DNA of 64,000 nucleotides from positions 186,001 through 250,000 of the forward strand of contig LSRY02000015.1 of assembly GCA_001643675.2 (NCBI GenBank), read 5' to 3'. Position numbers and translations under genes: made by a program. The stretch comes from Monocercomonoides exilis PA203 (lineage: Eukaryota; Protista; Preaxostyla). Position 1 is the stretch's first letter. The number at the start of each line of letters is the position of its first letter. Below, piece by piece: positions 40,770 through 64,000 of the stretch. The notes under the pieces are model-generated. The model was not told the origin of the DNA. It worked only from the letters and a program-made list of their open reading frames with translations, and made no database searches.

Positions 40770-41011
40770 TGTCTATATTATTTTGAAAAGTTCCTTTTGT
40801 TCAATTTTCGAATAAAATAAAAATTTCATATTTTGATAAAATTTATGTTAACACTCGCGAAACTTCGCTGTAATGAAAACAAATTCAAGACAATGTTTAT
40901 ATTTCCATTTCAGTGAAGTTTCGTGAGTGTAAACATAAATTTTATCAAAATATGAAAATTTTATTTTATTTGAAAATTAAACAAAAGGAACATTTCAAAA
41001 AAATTTAGACA
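40770..41011. mobile_element. ~240-bp foldback MITE
   Basis: Arms of ~100 bp pair along most of their length (tgtctatattattttgaaaagttccttttgt... / ...acaaaaggaacatttcaaaaaaatttagaca); sister copy at 54096-54339. Confidence 0.85.
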
Positions 41012-41837
41012 AGTCTTATTTCGAGAGAATTTTTAATTTGAATATTTCCAATCAAAGTCATCATAGGATCACTATTTTTTGTTTTTAACTATTTTCTTCC
41101 TCACTTAAAAAAAAACATTTTTATTTTTTTTTATCCTTTCATATCAAAGGGATTATAATTATCAAAAATATCTTCATTTTTTCTTGAAAAAACAAAATAG
41201 TGAAAAATAACTTATATGCTTTTGGTTGCAGCATACCCTTATTGATTCTCTTATTTCGTAAGAAATTATATTAAATGAGTAGTTCTTTTTGAATAGTCGC
41301 TAATGTGTAATATCAAGGTTTAATATTAATGTTCCTTATTTGTTCGCATTTTGCAATTTATCCATCAAACTTTATCACTTTGTAAATTTGAATAAAACAT
41401 TTATGTGGTATGAGTGTAAGTGCAAAATTTCAAAGTTTGATGGATATAAAACAAAAAACAATCGAATCTGGTGTGTTCTGATTTAACAAAGTTTTTTTCA
41501 TTTTTGACTTTTCAAAAAAAAAAACTAAAATAATTTTTTTTAATGATTTGTATTGCAAATACAAAAGAAAGAGATAACAACTTTCAAAATACTTGTGAAA
41601 TTGAGTTTTTGTGTTTAAAAGAAAAAACTCACATTTGTCATAATAAATTATAACAGCAAAATTTTCATCATTCCTCAAACATTCATTTTTTTATTTCAAA
41701 ATTTTTTTAAATAAATCATTCGTTAAAATTATCGTTCAAAAAACTTTTTATATTTTTCGTTATATTTGTTTTATTTTCTAAATATTATTATTAAAAGATG
41801 TATCCCAAAAAAAATATCTGAAAATGATACTTTAATT

Positions 41838-41893: not shown

Positions 41894-42369
41894 AATTCAT
41901 AATTATTTGTTTTCCATAAACAATTGTATTTGTTGTTGTTGCAATTCTTCGAATCTTTTTCATGAGTCGTCATTTTACAAAATTTGAAAAGAATGCAATT
42001 ATCCACACTTTAAAAAAACATTTGGGGGATGATATGTACTTTCAAGCTTTTAATGCGCAAAGCAATATAAATTTGTTTCACTTATGACATTTTTTAACTT
42101 AACCACATTTCAAAATAAATTTTATTTACATTTCTGTCAACAAACATCGTTGATATAATCACATAATGTTTTTTAACCTCACATATATTTCAGAAAATTA
42201 ACCCATTTATTTCAAATTTTCAGATAACAAGAAGTCAATGAAAAATTCATAATTTTTTGATGAAAATGACTGAAGTCAAATATTTTGTCCCATTTGATTT
42301 CAAAAATTTCGACCAGTCAAAATTCTTTAAGAAAAAACAATAAAGTGATCATTATAGATTTATTCGTTT

Positions 42370-45300
42370 GAAAAGATAACAAACATTTCATTCCTTCTTT
42401 TTCTGTTGAGAGATGCCACTTAATATGTCATGTCCCTTGAAGCTAGAAAATTTATGGTGATAAGAAATTATCATAGAATAAATTGCGCAATGAAAACCAT
42501 GTTTGTGCAAGCAGAAAAAAAAATTCAAAAAAAAAATGAAAAACTTTGATTCCAGAAAACAAACATCTAAAAGGTGTTGGTGACAAAAGTGGTGTTCAAA
42601 GAGTGGAAATTAATTATTTGTTTTCTATTCTAATAAAAATGAATAACATTTTAATTGTCAAGAAAACCGCCATCAATTTCTTTTCTTCTTTAGAAAAGAA
42701 AAGACTATGCAGGAAGATGTAACTTTGTTATTTCGACTTCCACAGAATGATCAGAAATCCTATATCTTTGATTCTCTTTTAGCTTATGCCCTTGTGCGAA
42801 TAAGGAAAATGAACTTTTCTTCTTCTTGTCTGTGCTATTCACTGTTCAATCCGTCTTGGGTTCCATCGTCCTCTCTATGCATTTGTGACTTCTTTCCTCT
42901 TGTCCTTGTCATCCTGGCAGTCTTCGTTTTCACCTCTTCCACCAACTCCTCCATAGAAGCCTCAACTTCTTCACACTTGGATTCTTTTTCTGAAAGGGCT
43001 CCATCAGTGGATTGTTCTCTTTTTTCTTCCTCTTCATCACTAACTATCGGACTTTCTTCCTTTTCACAGTCACCAATCTTCTGTTCCTTCATTGTTCCAG
43101 CAATTACTCGTGCCATTGACGATGCCAAATTAATTTTGAAATAGTGCTTAACAAGAGTATTTGTCTTCGGTGAAAGCCTAGCAAACTTGGCAATCTGTGA
43201 AGGCGGGATTCCTGCTATTGTTAATGTTGACAAGGTTGCTGCCTTAAAAGAGTACGGCTTGAATCTCTGAGGAACTCCTGCTTCCTTCATTGCATCCTTA
43301 GCAAACTTGCGGATACCCGAAGAAGTAAGCGGCTCGAATGTTGTTGTGTTGAGCAGAAGTTTGTTGCTGTTCTGTTTTTGTTTTGCCAGAAAATACAAGT
43401 CTTTTATTGCTGAAGTTGGACATATTTGTGGGAGTTCCGGAAGAAAAGGAACTGCAATCTCTGATCGTGTGTGTGATGTTTTCAACACTGTATCCAACTT
43501 CACACCTTCCTCGTCAAACTGAGAGTTCACCACGTTGACCCGCTCCAGTTCTGTAAATCTGCAGGCAGAGAAGAGCATTGTTAAGGTGATAACCTTCATT
43601 TTCAATGTATTGAATGATAACTTGTTGTTTGGGCCTAACTCGGTGAAGTATTTTAACAAAATATTCGGATTCCAAATCTCTGGAGCCATCTTCTTTCTTG
43701 ATGTGTCGTTTCTTTGGAATGCACGGAATAGGATCTTGATGATAGCAACATCTCCCAATGATGTATTGAAGGCTAGAACTGAATAAAATGACACTGCTGC
43801 TCTTATCATCTGTATTACAGAAACCTTGAAGCCTCAATTCTTCATTGTGTAAAAACAACCGCGTATCTGACGGTCCAGTCCGTCAAGTTGTCTAGTATAT
43901 GCCCATGGGCACACTTCTTCCACTGGTCTGAAAAGTGCGCGAAACAGAATAAATATCCATCCCATGTCGTTTGTGCAATTCCAGCCTTGCACTCCTCTGC
44001 GAGCTCCAAGGGGACATTTCTTTCATGAAGCGCGTGCAGTCACCAGGCTTCTCCTCTCTCCTTAATGGATTCAGTAGGATAACTTTCATCTTCCCCGGAG
44101 GAAGGCAGGCTCCCGTTTTCTTCATCAATGGTCACTCCCGAAGAATCTTGGAGCTGTAATTCAATTTCAAGCTGTAATAATTACTCGTTCGAAGTGGGAT
44201 GTTCCAATTCTAACCCTTCCAGCTCGGCAAAAGTATAATCGCTCGAGCATTCTCCATCTGAGCCTTTCGTATTACCATCGGAATCAGAGGTATCTGTGGA
44301 TGAGCTAGAACACATTCGTTGCTCCAAGGAACTGTCAATCCGTCTTCTGCAATTGGACTGCTCACTCCACACAATCTTTCCACTTTGTGATTGCGTTTAA
44401 ACGCAAAAGCATCGAGAGTCGGTCTCACTTTCAACTGTGCATGAACCTCTTCGAGTGCTTCGTCCTTTATCTCGTAGTCGCCTGCTCTTTCCAATCGAGA
44501 CAGCGCATCCGCTCTGTGGTTCTTTCTTCCTGGAAGATGTTGTGCTTTTATTGTCAGATTCCTCGCCTCCATCCATTTCCTTATCTTGCGAAGCACTGAA
44601 CGAAGATTCTTCCCCGCGTTCCAACGATTTATGTTGAAAACCACTGAGCTGTTGTCCGATTGATGCAAGAGACGAGATATTTTGTTGTCCTGAATTGTCT
44701 GAGAAAATAAGGAAGCGAAAGCTAAACAACTTGTTGTTCTCTGAAGTTGGACGATTGACAGCGGGCAGAGTGGGGGAATTTGGCGTGCCAATCCATTATG
44801 TTGTTGTTCACTCTGAATGTTGCACCCCATGCTGTTTCCGCAGCATCCGTTGTTAGCGTTGCTTAAGGAGAAAATACTGGTTGAAGTTGTCGAGGCTTGT
44901 TCAGGATCAACACACATTTGCATTTATGAATCTCCCTCAACACAATAGCATTCATCTTCATCATCCCGCTCCATCCACATATCTTGGCATTCTTCTGCAT
45001 GAGACGACGAAGAACTATGAGGTGAAGTGACGCATCCTGGTTTACGAATCTTACTGCGCTGAGCTTTCCAACTGCTGAGGCAAAATCCTTTATTCGAACT
45101 GTTTTGGCTCTTATTGCCTTCACTCTCCATTGACTCAGCATCGCTTTGGGAGATCCCAACCTCTCCTCGCACAATTGAACCGTGAATGCTTCCGTGTCCC
45201 ATGCAAACCCCAGAAAAGTGAACTTTCACCTCGGGATAAATGAACAATTGTACTTGTTGATAATCAAGCCCAGATTTTCCAAAAATCGAGTTACCTCGCT

Positions 45301-46630
45301 TGTGATTTCTTTCAACACGCTGAAATCGTGATGTTGGAGAATTAGATCGTCCAATCATGACATCACTCTCACATTCCGTCTTATTTTGGTTTTTGTTGAT
45401 AATTTCTTCAAAAATTTTGTGAAAAACCTTGGAGGATCTGAGTATCCGAACGGCATGTCGTTGAAAGCATAGTCGATGCCTTCGAATCTGAATGTGAGAT
45501 GTGGTCTGAGTTCGTTTGAAACCGGAATTTGACAGTTCGTTTGAGACAAATCCATTGCCACAACAAAGTCGTTCCTCATTCTCAACTTTTCTTCTGTTCT
45601 TTCATTCTCGCATTTGAAATGGATTTTGTCATTGCTGCTTTTTGTGTTCTACAATCAAAAAAATAGACTACGTGCTCCAGATTTCTTTAACATGATGAAA
45701 ATGTTGTAATGAAAATTTTCATCTATGTGAGGAATTCTGCTCACAATCCCTATTTCCAGCTGCTCCTTCAATTCCTTTTGAAAGGACATCCTTTGTTTCC
45801 TGCTCATTTGAGATTCTCCGTCCATGAATGTCATATTTCCCAAACAATTTTTTGCCATTCGATTGCACCAATGAGCCTAGACTCCATTTTTGATGAGATT
45901 TCCTCTGTTTATTTCTCATCCACTCTTGAATACAATTCGCTGTCCGACCTCATATCTTTTCTTCTTCTGGATTCTTTCTCGTCTGGTCTACTATTTATTA
46001 TTCTGAATTCCCGCGGTTCGTCCTGTTGTGTTTTTCTTCCAATACTTTTTTCTTGGTCCTGTGCTGCGAAATATGGACTATTGAAAATTTCTCTGAAAAA
46101 ATACCTTTTTCCTCAAGCTATTTGTTGCTTCGGATGATATTTTTGGAAGAAGAATCCTTTTTAATGAAAAATAAAAGAATGTGTGTCCCTGTTGTCTCTT
46201 CTGTTTTCTCGAGAATTCTACCAAAATGTGTATTTGGACCTGCGTCAAAAGTCTTCCTGCTGAAGCAGACTCCATTTTCTTTGCTTCCGCAAAACCAAAT
46301 CTTGCCTGAATTCGTTCTCTTCTTGCCTCCTGCATTGCTTGTGCAATCAGAATCAAGATGTCTTTTGCAATTTCATCAACGGCATCTGCCTTCATCTTGA
46401 TTCTTTGTATCGATAACAAAATGGCTTTGTAAGCAGGAATCAGATATCTCTCCGCTTATTCCCCCGCTTAATCCAATGCATCTTTATCCCAATATTCCGT
46501 TCAAACAGCTGCTGGAAGACTGTGGCCGATAATAGAGTTGAAATTGAGCTTATTACAGAATGAAGATACTTCGTTTATATTGGATCTTAAATATTTTTCA
46601 TCGAAAAGTGATATTGTTGGTTCAGCTTAT
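42370..46630 (-). mobile_element. DIRS-like tyrosine-recombinase retrotransposon copy 1 (degenerate, 5'-truncated)
   Basis: Gag fragment (EARRERIQARFGF), RT (DLSQ, MPFGYSDPPRFFTK, S*LDD), RNaseH (SDNSSVV, RADALSRLE), MT-like (LDAFA...AHPQ), YR 42835-43809; ITR-like motif at ~42390-42436. Confidence 0.9.
42835..43809 (-). CDS. Tyrosine recombinase (catalytic part) of DIRS copy 1
   Basis: SACRFTEL, LKTS, PYSFKAA, FARLSP, KHYF. Confidence 0.8.
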   Translation of the reverse strand: MIRAAVSFYSVLAFNTSLGDVAIIKILFRAFQRNDTSRKKMAPEIWNPNILLKYFTELGPNNKLSFNTLKMKVITLTMLFSACRFTELERVNVVNSQFDEEGVKLDTVLKTSHTRSEIAVPFLPELPQICPTSAIKDLYFLAKQKQNSNKLLLNTTTFEPLTSSGIRKFAKDAMKEAGVPQRFKPYSFKAATLSTLTIAGIPPSQIAKFARLSPKTNTLVKHYFKINLASSMARVIAGTMKEQKIGDCEKEESPIVSDEEEEKREQSTDGALSEKESKCEEVEASMEELVEEVKTKTARMTRTRGKKSQMHREDDGTQDGLNSE

Positions 46631-47799
46631 ACCTCTGTGACATGACAAGAGAAAATTGAAAAAATGACAAAATGACTGACATGATATTAAGGACTTGTCA
46701 AAAAGGGTAATTTATAACAATTTCATAATTCTTAATAACGAAAATAATGAATTTGAAAATCTTCATGAAATAATTCTTATTATTTTGTAAAAATCAAAAT
46801 CAAAATAAAATGTTTAGGTTCCCAATATTTATTTTATTTGACACGAAATGTCAGTTGAGGAATATTCTTGTCACAATTTGTCATTGACAGTCACTGACAA
46901 TAAAGAAAAAACAACCAGATATTACAAATGCTATCAACAAATCTTTTCCATAGTGCTTTGAAAAGTCATTATAAGTTTCAGCAATAGTTTATTTAATATA
47001 AATTTTAAAAATATGTATATATATGGGTCATTCTTTTTGAAAAGTCGCAACCGTTTAACTGATCTGAAAATCAGATCATAAATGATCAAATAATTTTGAT
47101 CATTCCGTTCCCAAAATATTAAGAGAAATATTTTGTATTATTGTTTATTACACTGATTCACAAATATTAAGTTTCAATAACACCAGCATCATATGAAGTT
47201 TTTATTTTTTTATCATGCTTTTGCAGGAAAATGCCCTTTTTGTTGATATAAGAGACAAACAATAATAAAAAGTTATTTTCCGTTTTTTCACTTCATCCAT
47301 TTGAGTGAACATTTTTATTTTTTGAATATCAATATTACTTTTTCCATTTCACTTTGTTAGAAATTGAATTGATAAAAAAAGCTTGCATTGGAATAAAATT
47401 CTTTAAACTAATAATTATAAAAAATTCGTCAATTCATTGCTTTTAAAAATTGAATTGTATTTTAATAGTTGAGTGCATAGACAAAAGTTTGAATTAATGC
47501 TGAAATATGAAAAGAAACAAGCAATTTTTCATTGTACAGCATATGGAAATGATTTGAAAAAAATGAACTTGTTTCATAATTTTTGATTCAAATCATGAAT
47601 CACATCCTGAATTGTTTCATTTCCACAATTGCATTATGTATCATATCATTTCAACTGAATTCATCATCTGAAGAAATCCTCCTCAATAATTTCTTTATTT
47701 AAAACATCTCTTCTCTGTTGTGTATTGACGCATCATTCTTGAATGCAAATATTGCTTTTGTACAGTTTTTGGAGCAACCTTCGATTACAAAGCCTTTTT

Positions 47800-54095: not shown

Positions 54096-54339
54096 TATGT
54101 CTTATTTTTTTTGATAGTTCCTTTTGTTTAATTTTCAAATAAAGAAAAAATTTCATATTTCTATCAAATTTCTGTTCACGTTGACCAAATTTTTCTAACA
54201 TGATAAAAAAATCTTGATAATGTGAATGATTCCATTCTCATGAAATCTGGTGAGTGAAAACAGAGATTTGATCGAATTATGAATTTTTTCTTTATTTGAA
54301 AATTTAACAAAAGGAACTTTTCAAAAAAATTTAGATATA
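54096..54339. mobile_element. ~240-bp foldback MITE, same family as 40770-41011
   Basis: agttccttttgtttaattttcaaataaagaaaaaattt ... aattttttctttatttgaaaatttaacaaaaggaact. Confidence 0.8.
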
Positions 54340-55144
54340 CTGCTAGAGGAAATTGTCGGCCCATTGCCAAACACAGCTTGGTCAGAAGAAAGTGCAATTC
54401 CTGAAACATTAGAAGGTTGGGGAGTGCCAATCATTCTTTATCACGAAAAGCGACATGACCTATAAAGTGGAATATCTTGAAAAGAAGAGAATAAATTGAA
54501 TGGCAGTTTCTTTCATAATAAAAATGTGTTGCATTTGAATAGTGTTAAAAACAGCACAAAACACAATTTTAAAAATAACTATAACATTTACACTCGAAAT
54601 AATCTTTTTTTATTTACAATAAGTTTGATTATTCTGTTGCTCAAGAATCATTTCTTCAAATTCAAAAAGCTCATTCTATTGGTTTCATGAAACATGAAAC
54701 AGCATAATTCATCGATTTGTGAAATCTTGGACTAGAGAAACCCTTTTTTTTACAAAAAAGAAATTAAATTATAAATGGAAATTATGCAATAAAAATACAA
54801 TATTGAAAGAGAAAATGGTTATTTCACTTCCTTCTCTTATATTGATGAGAGCGCCGCGTTATGGGTTAGTAACCCAGCTGATCAAAATGGCACTTAATGA
54901 AATGGTGAACAAATGAGCAAATGAAAATTTTAAAAAGAGACCTGACACTTGGCAAATTGAAAATTATTCCAAATGCAGTGAAAACACATGTTTGAAACAA
55001 GAAAAATACAATTTTTTGAAATTGAATGTTTTAAAATATATACTCTAAAGAGAAGGAATTATAAGCGTTGAATCTCTTCCCTCATTGTTATTCAGCAATG
55101 ACGAATTCATAAGGGGATGGGACGAAACACTTGGGGAGGGAGAA

Positions 55145-55197
55145 AGAGAAGGATGTGAACTAACCATTTTCTCTTTCAATCAAAACACAAGCATTTT
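55145..55197. repeat. Internal complementary region (ICR) of DIRS copy 2
   Basis: agagaaggatgtgaactaaccattttctctttcaat (55145-55180) is the near-perfect reverse complement of 54802-54837. Confidence 0.75.
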
Positions 55198-55219
55198 GAT
55201 TACAGAGAAAACATTGATT

Positions 55220-56194
55220 TCACTTCCTTCCCTTATATTTTTGAGAGCATAGATAATTGGGAAGATTTGACAATGTTAATAAGCTTGAACAAATATTCTT
55301 TTCTTCGTGTTGCTTCTTTTCCATTTCTTTTCTTCTTTGAGATCTTGTGCAGATAATGAATTCAATCTTAGCCTCGCTGATAACTGTCTGTGAAGCATTG
55401 TTTTCTTCATTGTCCTCTGGTTCTTCAACTTTATCTGGGAATGCAAATTCTGTTTGTTGTTTTCGATCTCCGTTTTCACATATTTCCTTTGTTGGTGTTT
55501 GCTCTTCTGAATTTGAACTGGTATTTGTTTCGGAATCGGATTCCGCCTCAGAATCTGAATCGGACTCTGACGCAGACCCACTTTTTTCAGGTTGGAGAAC
55601 AGTTGAATTGCATCTTGCTATCACGTGGGCCAGCTTGCTTGATACATCTGATTGGACGTAATGCTTTGTGATGGTGTTGCTTCTAGGAGAGAGTCTGGCA
55701 AACTTAGCAATTTGGGCTAATGGAATTCCTGCCATCGTTAGCGCAGTGATTGACGCATGCTTCAATGAGTAAGGCCCGAAACACTTTGGAATCCCAGCAT
55801 CCTGTAACATTTCAGCTGCATAATTGCGAATCCTTCTTGCAGAGAGGGCAAGATGAGTTTTCTCATCAATGAATAGTGAAGTAGTATTTGGCTGAGATTC
55901 TTTGATTCTGTTCCAAAGTTCCTTTTCTGAAGCTGCTTGGCACACAAGCGGCTGTTCTTTTAGAAAAGGGATGATAATATTTGTTCGTTCTGTTGATGTT
56001 TTTAATGATGAATCGAGTTTTATTGAATTGTCTCCAATAGTTGAATTCTGTAGGTTAATCCTTTCCAACTCCGTAAAGCGACAGGCGGAGAACAACATAC
56101 ATGCACATATAGCCTTTTTTGTCAATACATAAAAGTCAAGAAACATGTTCTCTCCTAATGATGTAATTTTTTGCAGCAGGAGTTGGGGGTTCAA
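55220..56194 (-). CDS. Tyrosine recombinase (catalytic part) of DIRS copy 2
   Basis: SACRFTEL, LKTS, PYSLKHA, FARLSP, KHYV. Confidence 0.8.
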   Translation of the reverse strand: MNPQLLLQKITSLGENMFLDFYVLTKKAICACMLFSACRFTELERINLQNSTIGDNSIKLDSSLKTSTERTNIIIPFLKEQPLVCQAASEKELWNRIKESQPNTTSLFIDEKTHLALSARRIRNYAAEMLQDAGIPKCFGPYSLKHASITALTMAGIPLAQIAKFARLSPRSNTITKHYVQSDVSSKLAHVIARCNSTVLQPEKSGSASESDSDSEAESDSETNTSSNSEEQTPTKEICENGDRKQQTEFAFPDKVEEPEDNEENNASQTVISEAKIEFIICTRSQRRKEMEKKQHEEKNICSSLLTLSNLPNYLCSQKYKGRK

Positions 56195-59148
56195 GATCCC
56201 TTGTTCGTTATTTTTCTACCAATTTTCTGATCTTCGGAATGATTATAATAGTCTTTGCATGAGTCCAGATTCTCCCAGTCCTCGATTGCACAGTAATTCT
56301 GAGATGAGCGATAATGCAGCGCATGTTTGTCTGAGCGTAGAAGCCTTCTTCCCTTTGTCTTTCAGGCTAATGAAAATGGAAGTTTATTTTTCAACCCACT
56401 CACTCCAAGCTTCAGGTGGTTATCTGTTCATATTATCTTCCCATATTTCACCAAACGCTTACAACAATATATAAATCCTCACACCATGCTTTCGGCAATG
56501 AAATAATTGTATTCATCGATTTCCCTTACGGAATATCCCTTTGAAACAAGCATTTTCCGAAACCATTTTTCTCCTTGCGATTCTAAGGATTGATGAGAAC
56601 TATTCTCATTCTGTTTTGCGGGAGACTTGCTTCCATCCGTTTCATCCATCTTCCATCCTTCAAAACCTGGTTCTGTTCTTTCCATCTCCATTCGCAGTGT
56701 CTCGACATTCTTATCAGTGGTTCCCATATCTGCCCTCTCCAATCTGGCATCAGAAGAAGAACATGTGCATTTTCCTCTATTGCTTTTAAAATCGTTGGGA
56801 CTATTAGTGGAATCGGTGGATGGGCTTAAATAACGCCTCTTTGCCATGATTGTTGGAGTCCGTCTTCGTTGAGTTTGCTTCATGGACCGCACCATCTGTA
56901 AGCTTTCGTGTTCTCGTTCGTTGCAAACGCATCCAACGTTATTTTGAGATTGAGGTTTTCCGTGATCTCGTTTAGCTCTTCTTGTTTAATGGAGAAATCT
57001 CCCCCTCTTTCTAGCCTGGATGGAGCATCTGCTCTGACATTCTTCATCCCTGGCAAGTGTTGGGCTTTTATTTGAATGTGATTGTTCTGTGCAAGTGTCC
57101 ATATTTTCATCAGCAACTTCCTGAGGTTTGTTCCTGCATTCCATCGATTGACATTGAAAACCGCTGCTGTATTGACTGGTCTGATTAGCAATCTGCAGAC
57201 TTTGTTCACCTGAAGAATGTGTTTGAAATGGTTGAGCGCTCGATTGATTGCAAATAATTCCCTGAAATTCGAGCTCTGGCATCTCAATTTCCCTGGAAGC
57301 GATTGATGGAAATCGTATTTCTTGTTGTTCATTTGAAGAACAGCTCACATAGCTCTCTCTCTGACGCATCTGTCGTTAAGGTTGCTTGCTGCTGGAATAA
57401 TGAGCAAAGCTGTCTCGGTTTGTTCGCATTCAGCCTCGATATCCATTTTTGAATGCTCGGAAGGATTGATGGGTTGATTCTCATCTTTCCTTTCCACCCC
57501 ATCTTTCTGACCATTCTGTTCAGCAGCATGCATATCGATGGAAGAAGGAGTGAAGCTTCCTTGAAAACGAAGCGAGTTGCACTTAGCTTGCCAATGTACG
57601 ATGCGAAATCTCTCACTCTTGTTTGCTCACATTTCAGTGCTCGGCGCCTCCATCTGTAGCATTCCGTGAGCAATTCTTTCTTTCTGTCTTTCTCTAAAGT
57701 TGCGGTGAAGTTGGAAGTGTCCCATGAATATCCGAGGAATGAAAAACGATTTGATGGTTTCATGAGGCTCTTTTCCAGATTAACAATATGTCCAATCTTC
57801 TGAAATATACTTATAACTTCTTGTGCGATTCTCTTTTGTTCTTGCTTGTCTTGATGGAGCAAGACAATGTCGTCCAAATATGCGACAGCTTTCACATTCA
57901 ATATTTTTCGAATGAACGAAATGACATTTCTCATGGTTTTTGTTAATATTCTTGGAGAGTCCTTGTTACCGAAAGGCATGCTGGTGAAGCAATAAAAGTC
58001 TTTGTTGAACTCGAAGCTTCGAAAAGGAGTGAAATCCTCTGAGACCTTGATGAGGTTGAAAGCTTGGCTTTAATCCCGAGTGACAGCAAAATCCCCATTC
58101 TTTATAATTCTCTCCACAGATCGATGATCCTCTTGTTTGAAGTGAATTGTTTTTATTGCATTGTTTAACCTCCTGCAATCCACAATCTGTCTCCAGCTCC
58201 CGTTCCTTATTCTGACTACAAATATTGGATTGAGAAATTTCACTTCGTTTTTGGTGATTTTCATGACAATTCCAGTTTTCACTTGAACTTTGATTAATTC
58301 CGCCAAAGCTTCCCTTGCTTCTAGTGATTGCTTCGGTCTCCTGCAATATTCCAGAGAATTGATAAGGGTTTTGCGAGCTTTGGCACTCCTCCAAACCGGA
58401 ACAACTCCTCTTTTGATGATCTTTTCTCCTCCCGCCATTTTCCAAACCTTGGCAAATAACGCTGTTCTTCCACAAATTGTGAAGTTGTGTTCTATTGAGA
58501 GTTTGTTTTGTCACCAGAACTCCCTCTTGAGTAACCCCTTGGAGCTCTGCTTGTTATGAATGATCGTCTTGCGCTGGTCGTTCGGGGACTATCTCGAAAA
58601 AACCGATAATTCTTTGTTCCGCTTTGCATTCCCCTGGTTTGTTTCTTCCTTGCATATGAATTTGTAATGCTTGCCGATCCCCATTTCAATTTTGTGGATG
58701 TTTTCTTTGATTTTTTCTAAATTTCTTTTTGTCTTTGAGTTAACAGCGATGATGAAAACTCGTCTTTCATTTTTCCTGCTTCAGAAAACCCATATCTTGC
58801 TTGTATTCTAACGTGTCTAGCTTCTTTCAGAACTTGGAATTAAAACAAACATGAATCTGCTATCATTTCTTTTGTTGTATTTCCTGACTTGATTGTTGAG
58901 AATGCCGAGAAAAGCGACTTTATTGCAGGATAAAGATATGTTTCTGTTCGTTCTCCTGCACGATCGAGCGCGTCTTTCCAAAACACTTTGGATCTTGTAA
59001 ATGGTGGTGGAGCATTCTGGATAAAATGACTCAAATCTTCATCTTTCATTAATGAAAGCGCTTCGTTAATTTTATTCCTTGGAAGATGCATATCGTAAAG
59101 AGAAACATTTGGTAGCTGCCAAAATATTTCGATAAATGTTTGCAGCAA

Positions 59149-59245
59149 TTAAAGTGCATAAGCACCTTAATTATCAAGAAAGTGTTTCATCAATTCCTTC
59201 TCTTTTTGAGAGACGCCACAATCTATGGGTCAGTCGCCACATTTG
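59149..59245 (+). repeat. Left terminus / left ITR of copy 3
   Basis: 59176-59245 is inverted at 63662-63730 (one indel); 59147-59213 is perfectly inverted at 63429-63495. Confidence 0.95.
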
Positions 59246-59249
59246 ATCA

Positions 59250-60164
59250 ATGATGTCTGCTTCGCAATTCCCTCCGATTGTTGGACATACGCCGTCGGCT
59301 GATTCTGCAATGCAGCACAGTGGGGCGCAAAGCCAACCAGGGACCTTGTCACAACCTAACATCTTTTCTTCCTCTTCAATTTTTTCACCTTCTTCATCGG
59401 AAGGTTTAGTACAGGAGTTGACCCCTTCAGCTGACAGAAAGGAGAATGATGATTTCTTAGACATATCACAACTTATTTGTCAGGAGTTTGAGGACATTTT
59501 CGGACAAACGCCGAATATTTCAATTTTTGATCTAAGGATTTCCCCAAGATCCGTTCAAGTTGTTGTTGAGGAGTATAAGACACAGGATTTTAGCCCGTTG
59601 TTATCGCTTGAACCGCACACTGCCAAGAGAACAGAAAACTGGATTAACGACGCATTAGATCAGGCGGGGTACAAGGTGGAGATTTTTCTTTTCCAGGCGA
59701 TTAAAGCTGCGCTCATAGGTTTAGCCGAGATACCGACTTCAAGTGAAGGTGCAAAACAAAGGCTTGCTGACATCTTGATAATGATTACCAGGGCTCTTCA
59801 AGAGGCACGAACGGTTCGAATTCAAGGCAGGTTTGGTTTCAGGGCTGCCACAGCGATGAGCACTGACGCTTCTACAAGAATTCTCACAGAGAGACAGGAA
59901 CTGATTCTCAAAGAAACAAGGCAGGAAGCCAAGCTAGAGAGAGGCTTCCAGAGACCAGCACTTCCTATTACACGTGTTCAGGCTCCTGTTAGAGAACAAC
60001 CAGGAACACTTCAAAGAAGATTTAGTTATCCCATTTCTCACACAAATACACGGTTTTTTCGGAGATACCCCCGGTCCTCAGCCCCCACAAGAAGACAGCA
60101 ATTCGGAAGAAGGAGGAACCAGAGCAGTTGGAGCAGGAGACCAGGGGTGCGTCAACAATTTTAG
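59250..60164 (+). CDS. Gag-like ORF1 of DIRS copy 3
   Basis: 304-aa ORF starting right after the ITR; Arg-rich C-terminus; DALD.AG and EAR..RIQ.RFGF motifs shared with copies 1 and 2. Confidence 0.85.
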   Translation: MMSASQFPPIVGHTPSADSAMQHSGAQSQPGTLSQPNIFSSSSIFSPSSSEGLVQELTPSADRKENDDFLDISQLICQEFEDIFGQTPNISIFDLRISPRSVQVVVEEYKTQDFSPLLSLEPHTAKRTENWINDALDQAGYKVEIFLFQAIKAALIGLAEIPTSSEGAKQRLADILIMITRALQEARTVRIQGRFGFRAATAMSTDASTRILTERQELILKETRQEAKLERGFQRPALPITRVQAPVREQPGTLQRRFSYPISHTNTRFFRRYPRSSAPTRRQQFGRRRNQSSWSRRPGVRQQF

Positions 60165-63100
60165 GTCCAGTTCACAAGGAAACAGAGCAGATGAGGCACA
60201 TTGGAGGGAGAACCGCTTTGTTTCTCTCAGCATGGAAGCGAATCGGAGAAGAGAAATTGATAAGCAATGGAGTGCAGGCCATGTGGAAAAGCAAACAGTC
60301 CAGGAAAGCTCTCAGCAGAGCCCAGTTCAGAGATGGAGCGTGTCTTCTCAACCAACAAAAGATCGAGGAATTCAAGAAAATATTAGAAGAACAGTTACGA
60401 ACAGGAGTTGTTATCCCAATGGAGCAGAGGGAGGTCAAACACAGAAACAATGTATTTCTCATTCAAAAGAAGTCAGGCAGCTGGAGACAGATTCTCGATT
60501 GTTGGAAACAAAACGCAGCAGTGAAGAGAACACATTTCAAGTGCGACGGAGAAAAAACAGGAGAACGACTAATAAGACGGAAAGATTACGCAGTATCCCT
60601 AGACTTGGAACAAGCTTATTATTTAATTCCAGTTTCAAGAGAACTAATTCCCTATCTTGCTTTCAGATTCATGGGAAAAGACTACTCCTTCAAAGGCATG
60701 CCTTTCGGCTTTGTAGATGCACCGCGCCTGTTCACACATATAATGAGGAAGGTGACAGAATAGATAAGAAGAAGATGGGATGTCAGAGTCGTTGCCTATT
60801 TGGACGATCTTCTTTTTCTGCATCAAGATCAAGAAGTCTTGAAGAAAATAATTCAGGAAATCATCTCGTTTCTAGAAAGCCTTGGCCTTCTGATAAACAA
60901 AAAGAAATGCAACCTCATGCCGAGTTCGCAGTTCAGCTTCCTTGGATTCGAATGGAATACAACCAGCTTCGATGTGTGTCTAACGAAGGAAAGAAGAAAG
61001 GCAGTGCGAGAGCTGTGTCACAAGTGGGAGAGAAGTTGCATAAGAGCCAAGACCGTCAGAGTGAAGGATTTCGCATCATACGTGGGAAAGCTCAGTGCAA
61101 CGCGCTTCGTTCTTTCAGACGCATCTTTCCACCTCCAATCCATCTACAAATTGTTGCAGAAAGGAGTTACGACAGGCGGATGGGATGGAATGATGAAGCT
61201 GAATGCGTCAATCCTCCTGCAGATAAGAAAATGGAGATGGATGTTGATGAAGAACCCCAGACGCAGACTAACTCCAGTGTTTATTCCAGAAGCAGTGCTA
61301 ACCACAGATGCATCAGAAAGCTCCTGGGGAGCAACCCTCAGACTAAACAGAATGTCACTAGATTGTCACAGTCGTTTTCCATTCGCGGTGAAAAACCAAT
61401 CATCCAACTTCAGAGAACAAAAAGCTGTGGAACTTGCCCTTACACATTTTGCACCAATCCTAGCAGAGAATCGGATTTCACAGTTGCAACTTCGTTCAGA
61501 CAACTCAGCAGTTGTTTTCAACGTGAACAGAAGGAATGCAGGAAGGAATCTCCGTCAAACACTCAAAAGGATATGGACATTGAAGGAGAAACTGAAGATA
61601 GTCCTGAGAGCAGTTCATCTCCCCGGATTGCAAAACACAAGAGCCGATGCTTTGTCCCGCCTGGAAAGAGCAGGAGACTACGGCATTGCAGACAGCGAGC
61701 TCAAAGAAATCTTGTCAGTTCTTCAAGTTACTCCAACGCTGGACGCCTTTGCAGCTCAACACAACCACAAGGTCGATCGTTGGTGCGGAATTGGAAGCCC
61801 ATTGGGAGAAGACGGTCTAGCATATCCATGGAAGAACGAGTGCGTTCTGGCACACCCCCCAGTTCCCCTGATTCCAATGACGATTCGGAAGGCACAGAAG
61901 GAGAGAGTACCAGTAGTATTACTCCTGCTGAATTGGAAGGGGCAGGACTGGGATGTGCTATTGGAGAAGACGCCTCATCGGACATTCAAATGGAGGAGTC
62001 TGAGAACAGTACTGAGAAAGGGTCCATCAATGGCAAGCACAGGTGCATGTCTTCCTCCAGGCCGGTTAAGAGTCATATTCATCAATCCACCAGAGTTAAA
62101 GGCGAGAGCTGGTGGAGAAGGGCTTTGGAAGAAAGATCTTTCCAAGTTTCATTGGCAGAGGAGTGCATATCGGGAATTGCTCAGTCGACGTGGGATGGAT
62201 ATTTATTCGGCTTCGCACACTTTGGAGAACAGTGGGAAAAGAGTGATATGGGCATAATTCCAGAGGATATTCACGAGTGGGCAGCTCGATGTTCCAGTAT
62301 GTTTATTACACTGAGAGACAATGGAATGAAGCTGTCATGTTTGCAGCTCATCCGCTCAGCAGTTTCATTTTTCACAAGCTTGGTTTACAACACAAATTTA
62401 GTGGATATTCCGATAATAAAAATATTGTTTAGAGGGTTTAGAAGAACAGAGAGGACAAGAAAAAAGAAGGTCCAAGAAATTTGGAATCCGAAGACCATTC
62501 TGACATTCTTTTCTAATCTTGGAGAAAATCAAAGCTTGAGTTTCAAACATCTGACAATGAAAGCCATTGTGCTCACCATGTTATTCACTGCGTGCAGGTT
62601 TACAGAGTTGGAAAGAGTAGATATGGAACGATCCAGATTCGAGCAGGAAGGAATATATCTAGACACAAGGCTAAAAACATCACTTAATCGAACAGAGATT
62701 GCTGTTCCTTTTTTAAATGAAAGCCCTTCAATTTGCCCAGCTTCGGCCATTCAAGTTTTGTGGAAAGAGATAAAGAAAAGAAAACCAGATGGAAATTAAT
62801 TGTTTTTGAATACCGAAACTTTTCACCCTCTTACAGTGAAAGGTATTAGACGATTGGCAAATAAGAGGTTGAAGGAAGCAGGAATTCCAGGCCATTTCAC
62901 TCCTTATTCAATAAAGGCTGCAACGCTTTCAACGCTAACGATGTCTGGAATTCCACCAACTCAGATTGCGAAGTTTGTTCGTCTTTCCCCCAGAACAGAC
63001 ACTTTGGTGAAGCATTATGTGAAGGCCAATCTTGCTTCAACCTTGGGGAAAGTGATTGTCTCAACTATGAATGTTCCCAGTGAAGAGTTAGCAAACAATC

Positions 63101-63423
63101 CGTGTGCAGAAAATGGTGTCAAGAAGTGCGTCAGACCAGACAGAGACCAGAAGAACAAAAAGGAGAGACGAGAAATGGAATCTGGGATGGTACTGAGGGA
63201 TAAGAAACGCCTGATGAAGCCAGGTTTGAGTGAGGAAGAAGCTAAAGATACTGTTGAATTCCCTTCCAGAGTAGACGAGCCTGATGAGGAGATGGAGGAA
63301 CAGAAGTCACTTGGAGAACAATTCATTATTCGAACAAGATCACAAGCAAAAAAGGAGGAAGAGAGCAACAACGCAAAGAAGACGCACACTGTGGTAGTAA
63401 TGATGGCTTCATCATCCAACTAA
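59974..63423 (+). pseudogene. Tyrosine recombinase ORF of copy 3, overlapping the whole RT ORF; one in-frame TAA at 62797-62799
   Basis: 941-aa ORF continued in frame by a 207-aa ORF; TACRFTEL, LKTS, PYSIKAA, FVRLSP, KHYV. Confidence 0.9.
60128..62257 (+). pseudogene. RT-RNaseH-methyltransferase-like ORF of copy 3, with one in-frame TAG at 60761-60763
   Basis: KKSGSWRQILD, LDLEQAY, MPFGFVDAPRLF, AYLDD, FLGF; TTDAS, SSNFRE, RSDNS, ADALSR; LDAFA...AHPPVP. ORFs 60128-60763 and 60800-62257 are in the same frame. Confidence 0.9.
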
Positions 63424-63428
63424 TTGAT

Positions 63429-63529
63429 TCTCTCAAAAAGAGAAGGAATTGATGAAACACTTTCTTGATAATTAAGGTGCTTATGCACTTTAATTAAAAA
63501 AGAAAGTGGAGAATCAATTCCTTCTCTTT
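63429..63529. repeat. Internal complementary region (ICR) of copy 3
   Basis: First part is the reverse complement of the element's first 67 bp; second part is the reverse complement of its last ~36 bp (4 mismatches). Confidence 0.92.
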
Positions 63530-63661
63530 GCCCACCACCGTTTTCACTCCCACCCTTTGAAGTTCTGTTTTCAAAACTGTTGATGTTTTTGTTGTTCCTT
63601 CTCTTTGCGCCTTTTGGTTTTAGAAGCGCAAAGTGGTTTTTATCCAATTCACCAAAACACA

Positions 63662-63736
63662 CAAATGGGCGACTGACCCATAGATTGTGGCGTCTCTCAA
63701 AAAGAGAAGGAATTGATGAAACACTTTCTTTTTTAA
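63662..63736. repeat. Right ITR of copy 3 plus short ttttaa extension
   Basis: caaatgggcgactgacccatagattgtggcgtctctcaaaaagagaaggaattgatgaaacactttctt is the inverse of 59176-59245. Confidence 0.95.
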
Positions 63737-64000
63737 AGAAGACTCTCCTTCATCTTCTTTAATTCGTGCTGGATCTGTCCGGCTATCAAGCTCCGACTGA
63801 ACGCTTGATTGGGAAGCGGAATAACTCCCTGATATTGAAGGAATTGCACTCGGAGGGCCACCAGAAAGCGGAGCTGACAAGGTTCGGTCGCGAGTCCGAT
63901 TCCCATGAAAATAGTCGACATTCTTCTTTGTGATCAGCGATCGTGACTAACCCATAACGTGGCGCTCTCATAAATATAAGAGAAGGAAGTGATATAAATG

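Follow-up and report, generated by a model that had tools for sequence, protein, structure and literature searches.

DIRS1-like retrotransposons have a described anatomy of inverted terminal repeats (ITRs), an internal complementary region (ICR), left and right extensions and a long overlap between open reading frames (ORFs) (Piednoel et al. 2011, PMC3266345). Their two ICRs overlap on a 3-bp circular junction, most elements begin and end with NTT, and integration is described as a recombination of the junction with an identical genomic sequence that leaves no target-site duplication (TSD) (PMC3266345). In Dictyostelium, DIRS-1 insertions tend to fall into DIRS-1 copies already present (Malicki et al., PMC7192593, citing Cappello et al.). 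That DIRS1-like elements occur in Excavata was regarded as unconfirmed by Piednoel et al. (PMC3266345), and the paper on the Nanopore genome of Monocercomonoides exilis has no mention of DIRS (PMC8767320). We have analyzed a stretch of 64,000 nucleotides from M. exilis PA203 (contig LSRY02000015.1, positions 186,001 to 250,000; referred to below as the window), in which a DIRS-type (tyrosine-recombinase) retrotransposon of ~4.6 kb, here called the insert, lies at 59149-63734 on the plus strand. This DIRS1-like element very probably entered ORF1 of an older host element, which belongs to another family and lies on the opposite strand, by conservative integration of the tyrosine recombinase (YR) type. 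The evidence observed directly consists of the anatomy of the insert, exact empty sites, an AA at both ends throughout the family, and the lack of any longer TSD.

Junctions, empty sites and the family-wide dinucleotide

The left junction (59140-59160) reads ...TTGCAGC-AA-TTAAAGTGCAT, or in short form ...TTGCAGC-AA-TTAAAGTG, and the right junction (63722-63745) reads ...CACTTTCTTTTTT-AA-AGAAGACTC, in short form ...CTTTCTTTTTT-AA-AGAAGAC. The features that define these ends are as follows.

59147-59148, plus strand: left shared AA, the crossover position; start of the stretch complementary to ICR arm 1; single in uninterrupted host paralogs
59149-59175, plus strand: left extension of the insert, outside the ITR and complementary to the ICR only
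59176-59238, plus strand: left ITR, complementary to 63668-63730 at 63 of 63 nt (repeat finder)
63429-63529, plus strand: ICR, with two arms that are the reverse complements of the left end and the right end
63668-63730, plus strand: right ITR, the perfect 63-nt partner of the left ITR
63731-63736, plus strand: short right extension TTTT, followed by the right shared AA (63735-63736)

By the same repeat finder, ICR arm 1 (63429-63495) is complementary to the left end 59147-59213 at 67 of 67 positions, and arm 2 (63494-63529, 36 nt) matches the complement of the right end 63701-63736 at 89%. Exactly 2 nt, 63494-63495 (TT on the plus strand, AA in the termini), are common to both arms, and the ICR therefore spells the joined ends CTTTTTT-AA-TTAAAGTG with one AA. 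Complementarity to the ICR ends at the AA on either side, and neither C59146 nor A63737 extends it. The ICR junction CTTTCTTTTTTAA/TTAAAG is common to more than 18 ICRs of the insert family. A sequence-only reading of the window had given the same junction letters (left gcagc-AA-ttaaagtg, right ctttttt-AA-agaagac) and an ICR-encoded junction with a single AA; re-reading the sequence returned these letters, and the arm matches and their 2-nt overlap agree with such a junction.

Two other descriptions of the junction were rejected. The AA cannot be a mere part of the ITRs, as the AA...AA pair is direct, not inverted, and one AA is already present in the empty sites. A 3-bp junction is ruled out for the window locus, where the target is CAA and the junction TAA. 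The overlap in the insert is 2 nt (AA) rather than a 3-bp circular junction with NTT termini, and the third base is T at -1 in only 11 of 18 targets, being C at the window target. The 3-bp junction was treated as a descriptive regularity of DIRS1-like elements, not as a strict criterion.

The window right ITR (63701-63730) reads GATGAAACAC, the exact complement of the window left ITR, and the window's own ICR arm (63500-63529), together with most family copies (loci L032-L048), reads GATTCTCCAC; L033 and L035 carry the window variant. This suggests either that no more than the outermost ~14 nt of the right end are templated by the ICR or that the ITRs underwent conversion.

On the minus strand, 63880-63737 is translated as ...ARIKEDEGESS and 59148-58840 as LLQTFIEIFW..., both in frame 1. 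The two host flanks were queried separately against the Nanopore-based assembly (82,301,135 bases in 101 contigs). Their matches abut exactly in other copies, for example at C1:391743-392041 and C1:391478-391742, and in 14 uninterrupted host-family copies (L062-L075) the flanks meet at the site without a gap. These copies represent at least 11 independent loci, because four of them, on contigs C1 and C27, have one flank in common. The site sequence is TGCAA/AGAAGA in 6 of the 14; the rest have TGCAA followed by GGAAGA, TGAAGA or CGAGGG, or are more diverged. In L063, ORF1 runs straight across the site (...EDEGESSLQQAFIEIF... / ...RIEEDEGESSLQQAFIEIFGQ...) and is colinear, codon for codon, with ...RIKEDEGESS and LLQTFIEIFWQ... 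of the window. The exact 15-mer tgcagcaaagaagac was not found in the host paralogs, because they are only 83-93% identical to the host copy; its core GCAAAGAAGA is present. The target is C-AAA-G, and the filled site has two A on the left and three on the right, of which the ICR junction supplies two, for zero net change. Restoration of the host frame follows from the exactness of the insertion and is not a separate phenomenon. The sequence-only reading had predicted that removing the insert would fuse the host gag frame, which both the shared frame of the two pieces and the uninterrupted ORF1 of L063 bear out. It had also set the alignment of uninterrupted host-family copies beforehand as its refuting test: the 14 copies proved contiguous, with the core in place.

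Two further insertions of the family could be compared with empty paralogs that lie in the window itself.

L016/L033, filled: CAAAT-AA-[element]-AA-ATAAAAATTTCAT
L016/L033, empty paralog, window 54247-54336, minus strand: CAAAT-AA-AGAAAAAATTCAT (CAAAT-AA-AGAAAAAATT)
L008/L040, filled: GATC-AA-[element]-AA-TTAATATTTTGTGAC
L008/L040, empty paralog, window 47015-47104, minus strand: GATC-AG-TTAAACGGTTGCGAC (GATC-AG-TTAAAC)

Both are colinear and have a single dinucleotide each, which brings the number of independent empty sites to three. A short palindromic repeat resembling a miniature inverted-repeat transposable element lies at 54104-54330 of the window, with arms 54104-54152 and 54282-54330 that are 92% complementary. 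It occurs in several copies, also at window 40817-41014 and L024:2094-2219, and one elsewhere (contig C11) received a DIRS insertion.

The insert family has ~22-25 copies in the assembly. The left junction is AA in 16 of 18 independent insertions (background P(AA) 0.12, p = 3e-13) and TA in the remaining two, and the right end is AA in all 16 that could be counted as independent. No direct repeat beyond AA was found in 14 paired insertions, a set without the right ends of L009, L010, L013 and L019; both junctions are exact in each, with no deletions or filler. The exact junction without a longer TSD that had been claimed from the one locus is also seen at the other two empty sites and in the 14 paired insertions, and the target logo built from the gathered insertion flanks has AA at the same frequencies, again with no longer TSD. 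The two TA-left cases, L005/L038 (C25:1835362-1839951) and L006/L039 (C21:774560-779149), have AA at the right end and in the ICR. TA on the left with AA on the right is what one would expect of a right AA contributed by the element, and it speaks against a mere 2-bp duplication; the cases are consistent with exchange at a target TA that has one base in common with the junction. The T-run before the terminal AA is T7 rather than T6 in two right ends (L035 and L041), with 6 T in the L035 ICR. Either genuine slippage or a homopolymer error of Nanopore sequencing may lie behind this; given the Nanopore assembly, the AA reading at these two right ends depends on homopolymer length.

Seven of the ~22 insert-family copies lie on contig C21 (at 94876, 297154, 320196, 362877, 503859, 546242 and 774560), perhaps as a result of local hopping or because the chromosome is rich in repeats. 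DIRS copies are also found paired with identical flanks, often inverted, ~9-40 kb apart or on two contigs: on C1 (383099 / 391743), C27 (812525 / 821698), C80 (1302163-1306435 / 1338017-1342288) and C52 / C38. These pairs are segmental duplications or uncollapsed haplotypes.

The insert and its host element

The insert has the ITRs, ICR and reverse transcriptase (RT) of a DIRS1-like element, with a tyrosine recombinase instead of a DDE integrase. Its reading frames are the following.

59247-60161, plus strand: ORF1 (gag-like, 305 codons), homologous to the split ORF1 of the host (tblastn 2e-22)
60026-62254, plus strand, frame 1: RT / RNase H / putative methyltransferase frame, with one in-frame stop at 60761-60763
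59938-63420, plus strand: long frame overlapping the RT frame, open for 953 codons (59938-62796), with a stop at 62797-62799, then on to 63420
62257-63420, plus strand: YR part of the long frame, the 3' portion that does not overlap the RT frame

No Pfam family was matched by ORF1 of the insert or of the host. Both pieces of the RT frame match RVT_1 (1.2e-9 and 1.5e-11, both above the 29.6-bit cutoff), and RNase H-like matches are weak (RVT_3, 0.0037), at the place where DIRS elements have RNase H. The sole match for 61664-62254 is to Pfam Dam (PF05869; E = 0.2, 11.7 bits, below the cutoff), in a position that fits a methyltransferase-like domain. In the window copy the YR has only a weak Pfam match (0.09), because a stop splits the frame; it is open in several other copies of the family, and an intact one (L034:1818-3197, minus strand) matches Phage_integrase at 1.5e-8 and 35.1 bits (Pfam gathering cutoff 27.1). 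A Pfam search of all frames of the insert found no DDE integrase or endonuclease domain. When the YR alignment was used as a profile against PDB sequences, there was no match, even at E = 10, and a structure prediction for the YR (AlphaFold, 5-sequence alignment; pLDDT 33) was not usable. Judged by eye, the YR A1 consensus has ACRFTEL (Arg), FTPYSIKAA at the HxxR position and LVKHYV (Tyr).

Comparison of the insert proteins with the window by tblastn revealed a further pair of DIRS-like copies, each on the minus strand. One of them is the host, whose parts are listed here.

54802-64033, minus strand: host DIRS-like element, whole; 64033 lies 33 nt past the window and was read from locus L031
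54802-59148, minus strand: host 3' part, with the right terminus, ICR, degenerate frames for YR and RT and the C-terminal ORF1 piece (59148-58840)
55144-55248, minus strand: host ICR, which joins both ends with an AT overlap at 55179-55180
63737-64000, minus strand: host 5' part, with the N-terminal ORF1 piece (63880-63737) as well as the left ITR; at 64033 the element finishes with ...GTTTTGAT

The match to host ORF1 (59148-58720, 34% identity, 2e-22) begins exactly at the junction. RT is matched at 58606-56532 (2e-43 / 1e-69) and YR at 56416-55616 (1e-41 / 6e-26). The host termini begin and end with AT, starting with the AT at 54802, and the host family thus has the same junction logic with AT for AA. 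The host belongs to a DIRS family other than that of the insert and lies on the opposite strand, with 34-47% protein identity between the two, as the sequence-only reading had stated. Its frames are degenerate and broken into many pieces; insert and host are both dead copies now, with in-frame stops.

The AA and the left extension of the insert fold into a hairpin at its terminus (59147-59172; DNA fold -5.7 kcal/mol, z = -3.75) of the form AATTAAAGTGC-ATAA-GCACCTTAATT. The left end of the host has one as well, ATCAAAAC-ACAAGC-GTTTTGAT, at 64033-64012 (L031:1973-1994, minus strand; z = -2.8). The left extensions of the two families thus each form a hairpin at the terminus, beginning with the junction dinucleotide; they are unlike in sequence and alike in structure, and the hairpin may have a role in priming or in recombinase binding.

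The third DIRS-like copy lies at ~43090-46620 on the minus strand and has 51-67% protein identity to the insert. No ITR pair was detected for it within 42300-47400, and it hence provides no third junction; it is probably truncated, beside a Pack-like element with terminal inverted repeats that starts near 47020.

Target sites and the nesting of DIRS elements

In the target flanks of the insert family, T makes up 58% of positions -12 to -3, compared with a background of 34%. There is a pyrimidine at -1 in 17 of 18 targets and A or T at +1 in 15 of 16, with A at +3 in 14 of 16 and at +4 in 13 of 16. This oriented pattern (T-run, Y, AA, W, N, AA) mirrors the junction of the element, TTTCTTTTTT-AA-TTAAAGTG. 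The 14 targets that were scored match the junction at a mean of 8.64 of 18 flanking positions, compared with 5.18 (standard deviation 2.14) for random AA sites. The control comprised 16,327 random AA sites from the same flanks and 20,000 resamples, none of which reached the real mean (p < 5e-5). The new observation here is that the target sites resemble the element junction beyond the AA. The likeness may reflect binding of the recombinase to a pseudo-site. The target in the window scores 5 of 18, no better than random, and is among the least junction-like of the 14.

The sequence-only reading had also proposed that the nesting may reflect targeting of related elements. Active targeting of DIRS sequences by the insert family, as proposed for Dictyostelium DIRS-1, would fit a window that holds one nested case and three DIRS copies within 21 kb, but it is unlikely in view of the other insertions: among ~18 independent insertions only 1, the window copy, falls within DIRS coding sequence, the 14 other copies of the host family have no insert at this site, and the window target has the junction likeness of a random AA site. 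Two other flanks come near DIRS sequence, that of L032 with a DIRS end 1.2 kb away and that of L016 with a YR-like frame ~0.8 kb away. At least 86 DIRS-like RT loci were scored among 503 first-look candidates (up to ~500 loci) in 82 Mb. Given 86 to ~500 such loci, the chance of one nested case is ~0.1-0.4; as DIRS-like loci make up at most ~2-3% of the genome, a single nested insertion out of 18 is unremarkable. Pairs of RT loci less than 10 kb apart number 3-4 among the 86 scored, where ~0.9 would be expected. This excess hints weakly at clustering and not at targeting, and clustering can come from common AT-rich, gene-poor landing zones.

Mode of integration

In the conservative exchange that we favour, the two ends of the element would be joined as they are in the ICR, ...CTTTTTT-AA-TTAAAGTG..., and would exchange strands with the target C-AA-A inside the common AA. 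Target AA and junction AA would then yield one AA per junction, and no base would be gained or lost. The donor was probably a closed double-stranded circle, and the chemistry would have been performed by a YR, most likely the family's own, acting in cis or in trans. Precisely such a footprint is to be expected under the published model (PMC3266345, PMC7192593).

Several points weigh against conservative exchange from a circle by the YR of the family. Most of the DIRS-1 cDNA of Dictyostelium is linear and single-stranded (PMC7192593), the circular donor is read from the footprint, and the footprint is alike for a circle and for linear cDNA with the same ends, which it cannot separate. The YR of the family has YSIK where HxxR is expected, which makes its catalytic competence putative, and the window copy's own YR and RT are both broken by stops. 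Classical tyrosine recombinases require 6-8 bp of identity between cleavage sites, and here the obligatory identity is only 2 bp. The empty sites come from paralogs and not from orthologs, and in a Nanopore assembly the lengths of the T-runs beside the right AA are perhaps unreliable.

A linear cDNA, single- or double-stranded and with AA ends, could instead have been joined to a chromosomal break by microhomology repair of the host. This would leave a footprint identical to that of the crossover, 2 bp is a typical microhomology length, and the mostly linear, single-stranded state of Dictyostelium DIRS-1 cDNA (PMC7192593) would suit it. Such repair would hardly be expected to leave 14 paired insertions exact at both junctions, with no deletions and no filler bases, nor would random breaks show an oriented preference over ~18 nt that mimics the junction; moreover, the YR gene has been kept open in several copies of the family. 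We regard this route as improbable.

More doubtful still is an ordinary 2-bp TSD, in which a nuclease would cut a preferred AA with a stagger of 2 nt and a linear TTAAAG...CTTTTTT would be filled in there, so that the AA is duplicated. Its arithmetic is the same, one AA in the empty site and one per junction, but every ICR has a single AA between the ends, so that the AA belongs to the joined ends of the element. At L005 and L006 a TSD would yield TA twice, where TA is found on the left and AA on the right, and the Pfam search of all frames gave no DDE integrase or endonuclease domain. An assembly artefact or chance juxtaposition, conceivable in a Nanopore-based, repeat-rich assembly (PMC8767320), can practically be dismissed, as the element ends are base-exact and identical to those of ~20 other copies and the host frame is colinear with its paralogs codon for codon.

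Returning to conservative exchange, a more specific version can be put forward only tentatively: the family YR, with its non-canonical motif, might need identity over 2 bp and use junction-mimic pseudo-sites of ~18 nt (T-run, Y, AA, W, N, AA), with the hairpin lying in the recombination or priming site.

Lambda Int, Cre/loxP and XerC/D carry out a conservative reciprocal exchange between a site on a circular donor and a target site, and can use pseudo-sites that resemble the donor site. The insert is like these classical systems in that no bases are gained or lost and both products carry the common core. It differs from their identical overlap region of 6-8 bp in that only the AA is invariant and the flanks show a preference; it also appears to have no evident symmetric pair of binding arms around the crossover, and the motif of its putative recombinase looks non-canonical. 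Crypton DNA transposons and the Ngaro and PAT elements likewise encode a eukaryotic tyrosine recombinase, and like them the insert has no classical TSD; Cryptons, however, have no RT, and Ngaro and PAT have split direct repeats, whereas the insert has ITRs and an ICR. The closest likeness is to DIRS1-like elements such as Dictyostelium DIRS-1 (PMC3266345), in the ITRs, the overlapping two-arm ICR, the left and right extensions and integration at a short junction-identical sequence without TSD; nesting in DIRS copies is known for DIRS-1 as well (PMC7192593). The differences are a junction of 2 bp, AA in the insert and AT in the host family, in place of the 3-bp NTT/ATT junction of most DIRS1-like elements, a long left extension that forms a terminal hairpin, YSIK for HxxR in the YR of the insert family, and an oxymonad (Metamonada) as the host organism.

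The published integration model is thus confirmed in a new host; there is no new mechanism, and the picture of how such elements move stays as it was. To our knowledge, a base-exact comparison of empty and filled sites has seldom been available for DIRS elements, and their integration has never been reconstituted. The three independent empty sites of a single family and the target logo back the model of junction-identical integration without TSD, indicate that 2 bp can suffice as the shared sequence, and reveal targets that look like the element's own junction. They also place on record DIRS1-like elements of complete structure in an oxymonad, that is, in a lineage where the presence of DIRS has been uncertain. 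If the tentative version above proves true, the family would represent a eukaryotic integrase system with naturally minimal homology, with base-exact evidence from empty and filled sites for DIRS integration in Metamonada.

Another DIRS family, with RT matches at 55-57% identity (for example C31:753985, C17:1203498 and C36:1243728), has exactly one in-frame TAG within the RT/RNase H match in most copies, and two copies are without it. The TAG was either inherited from a defective master copy or is subject to programmed read-through.

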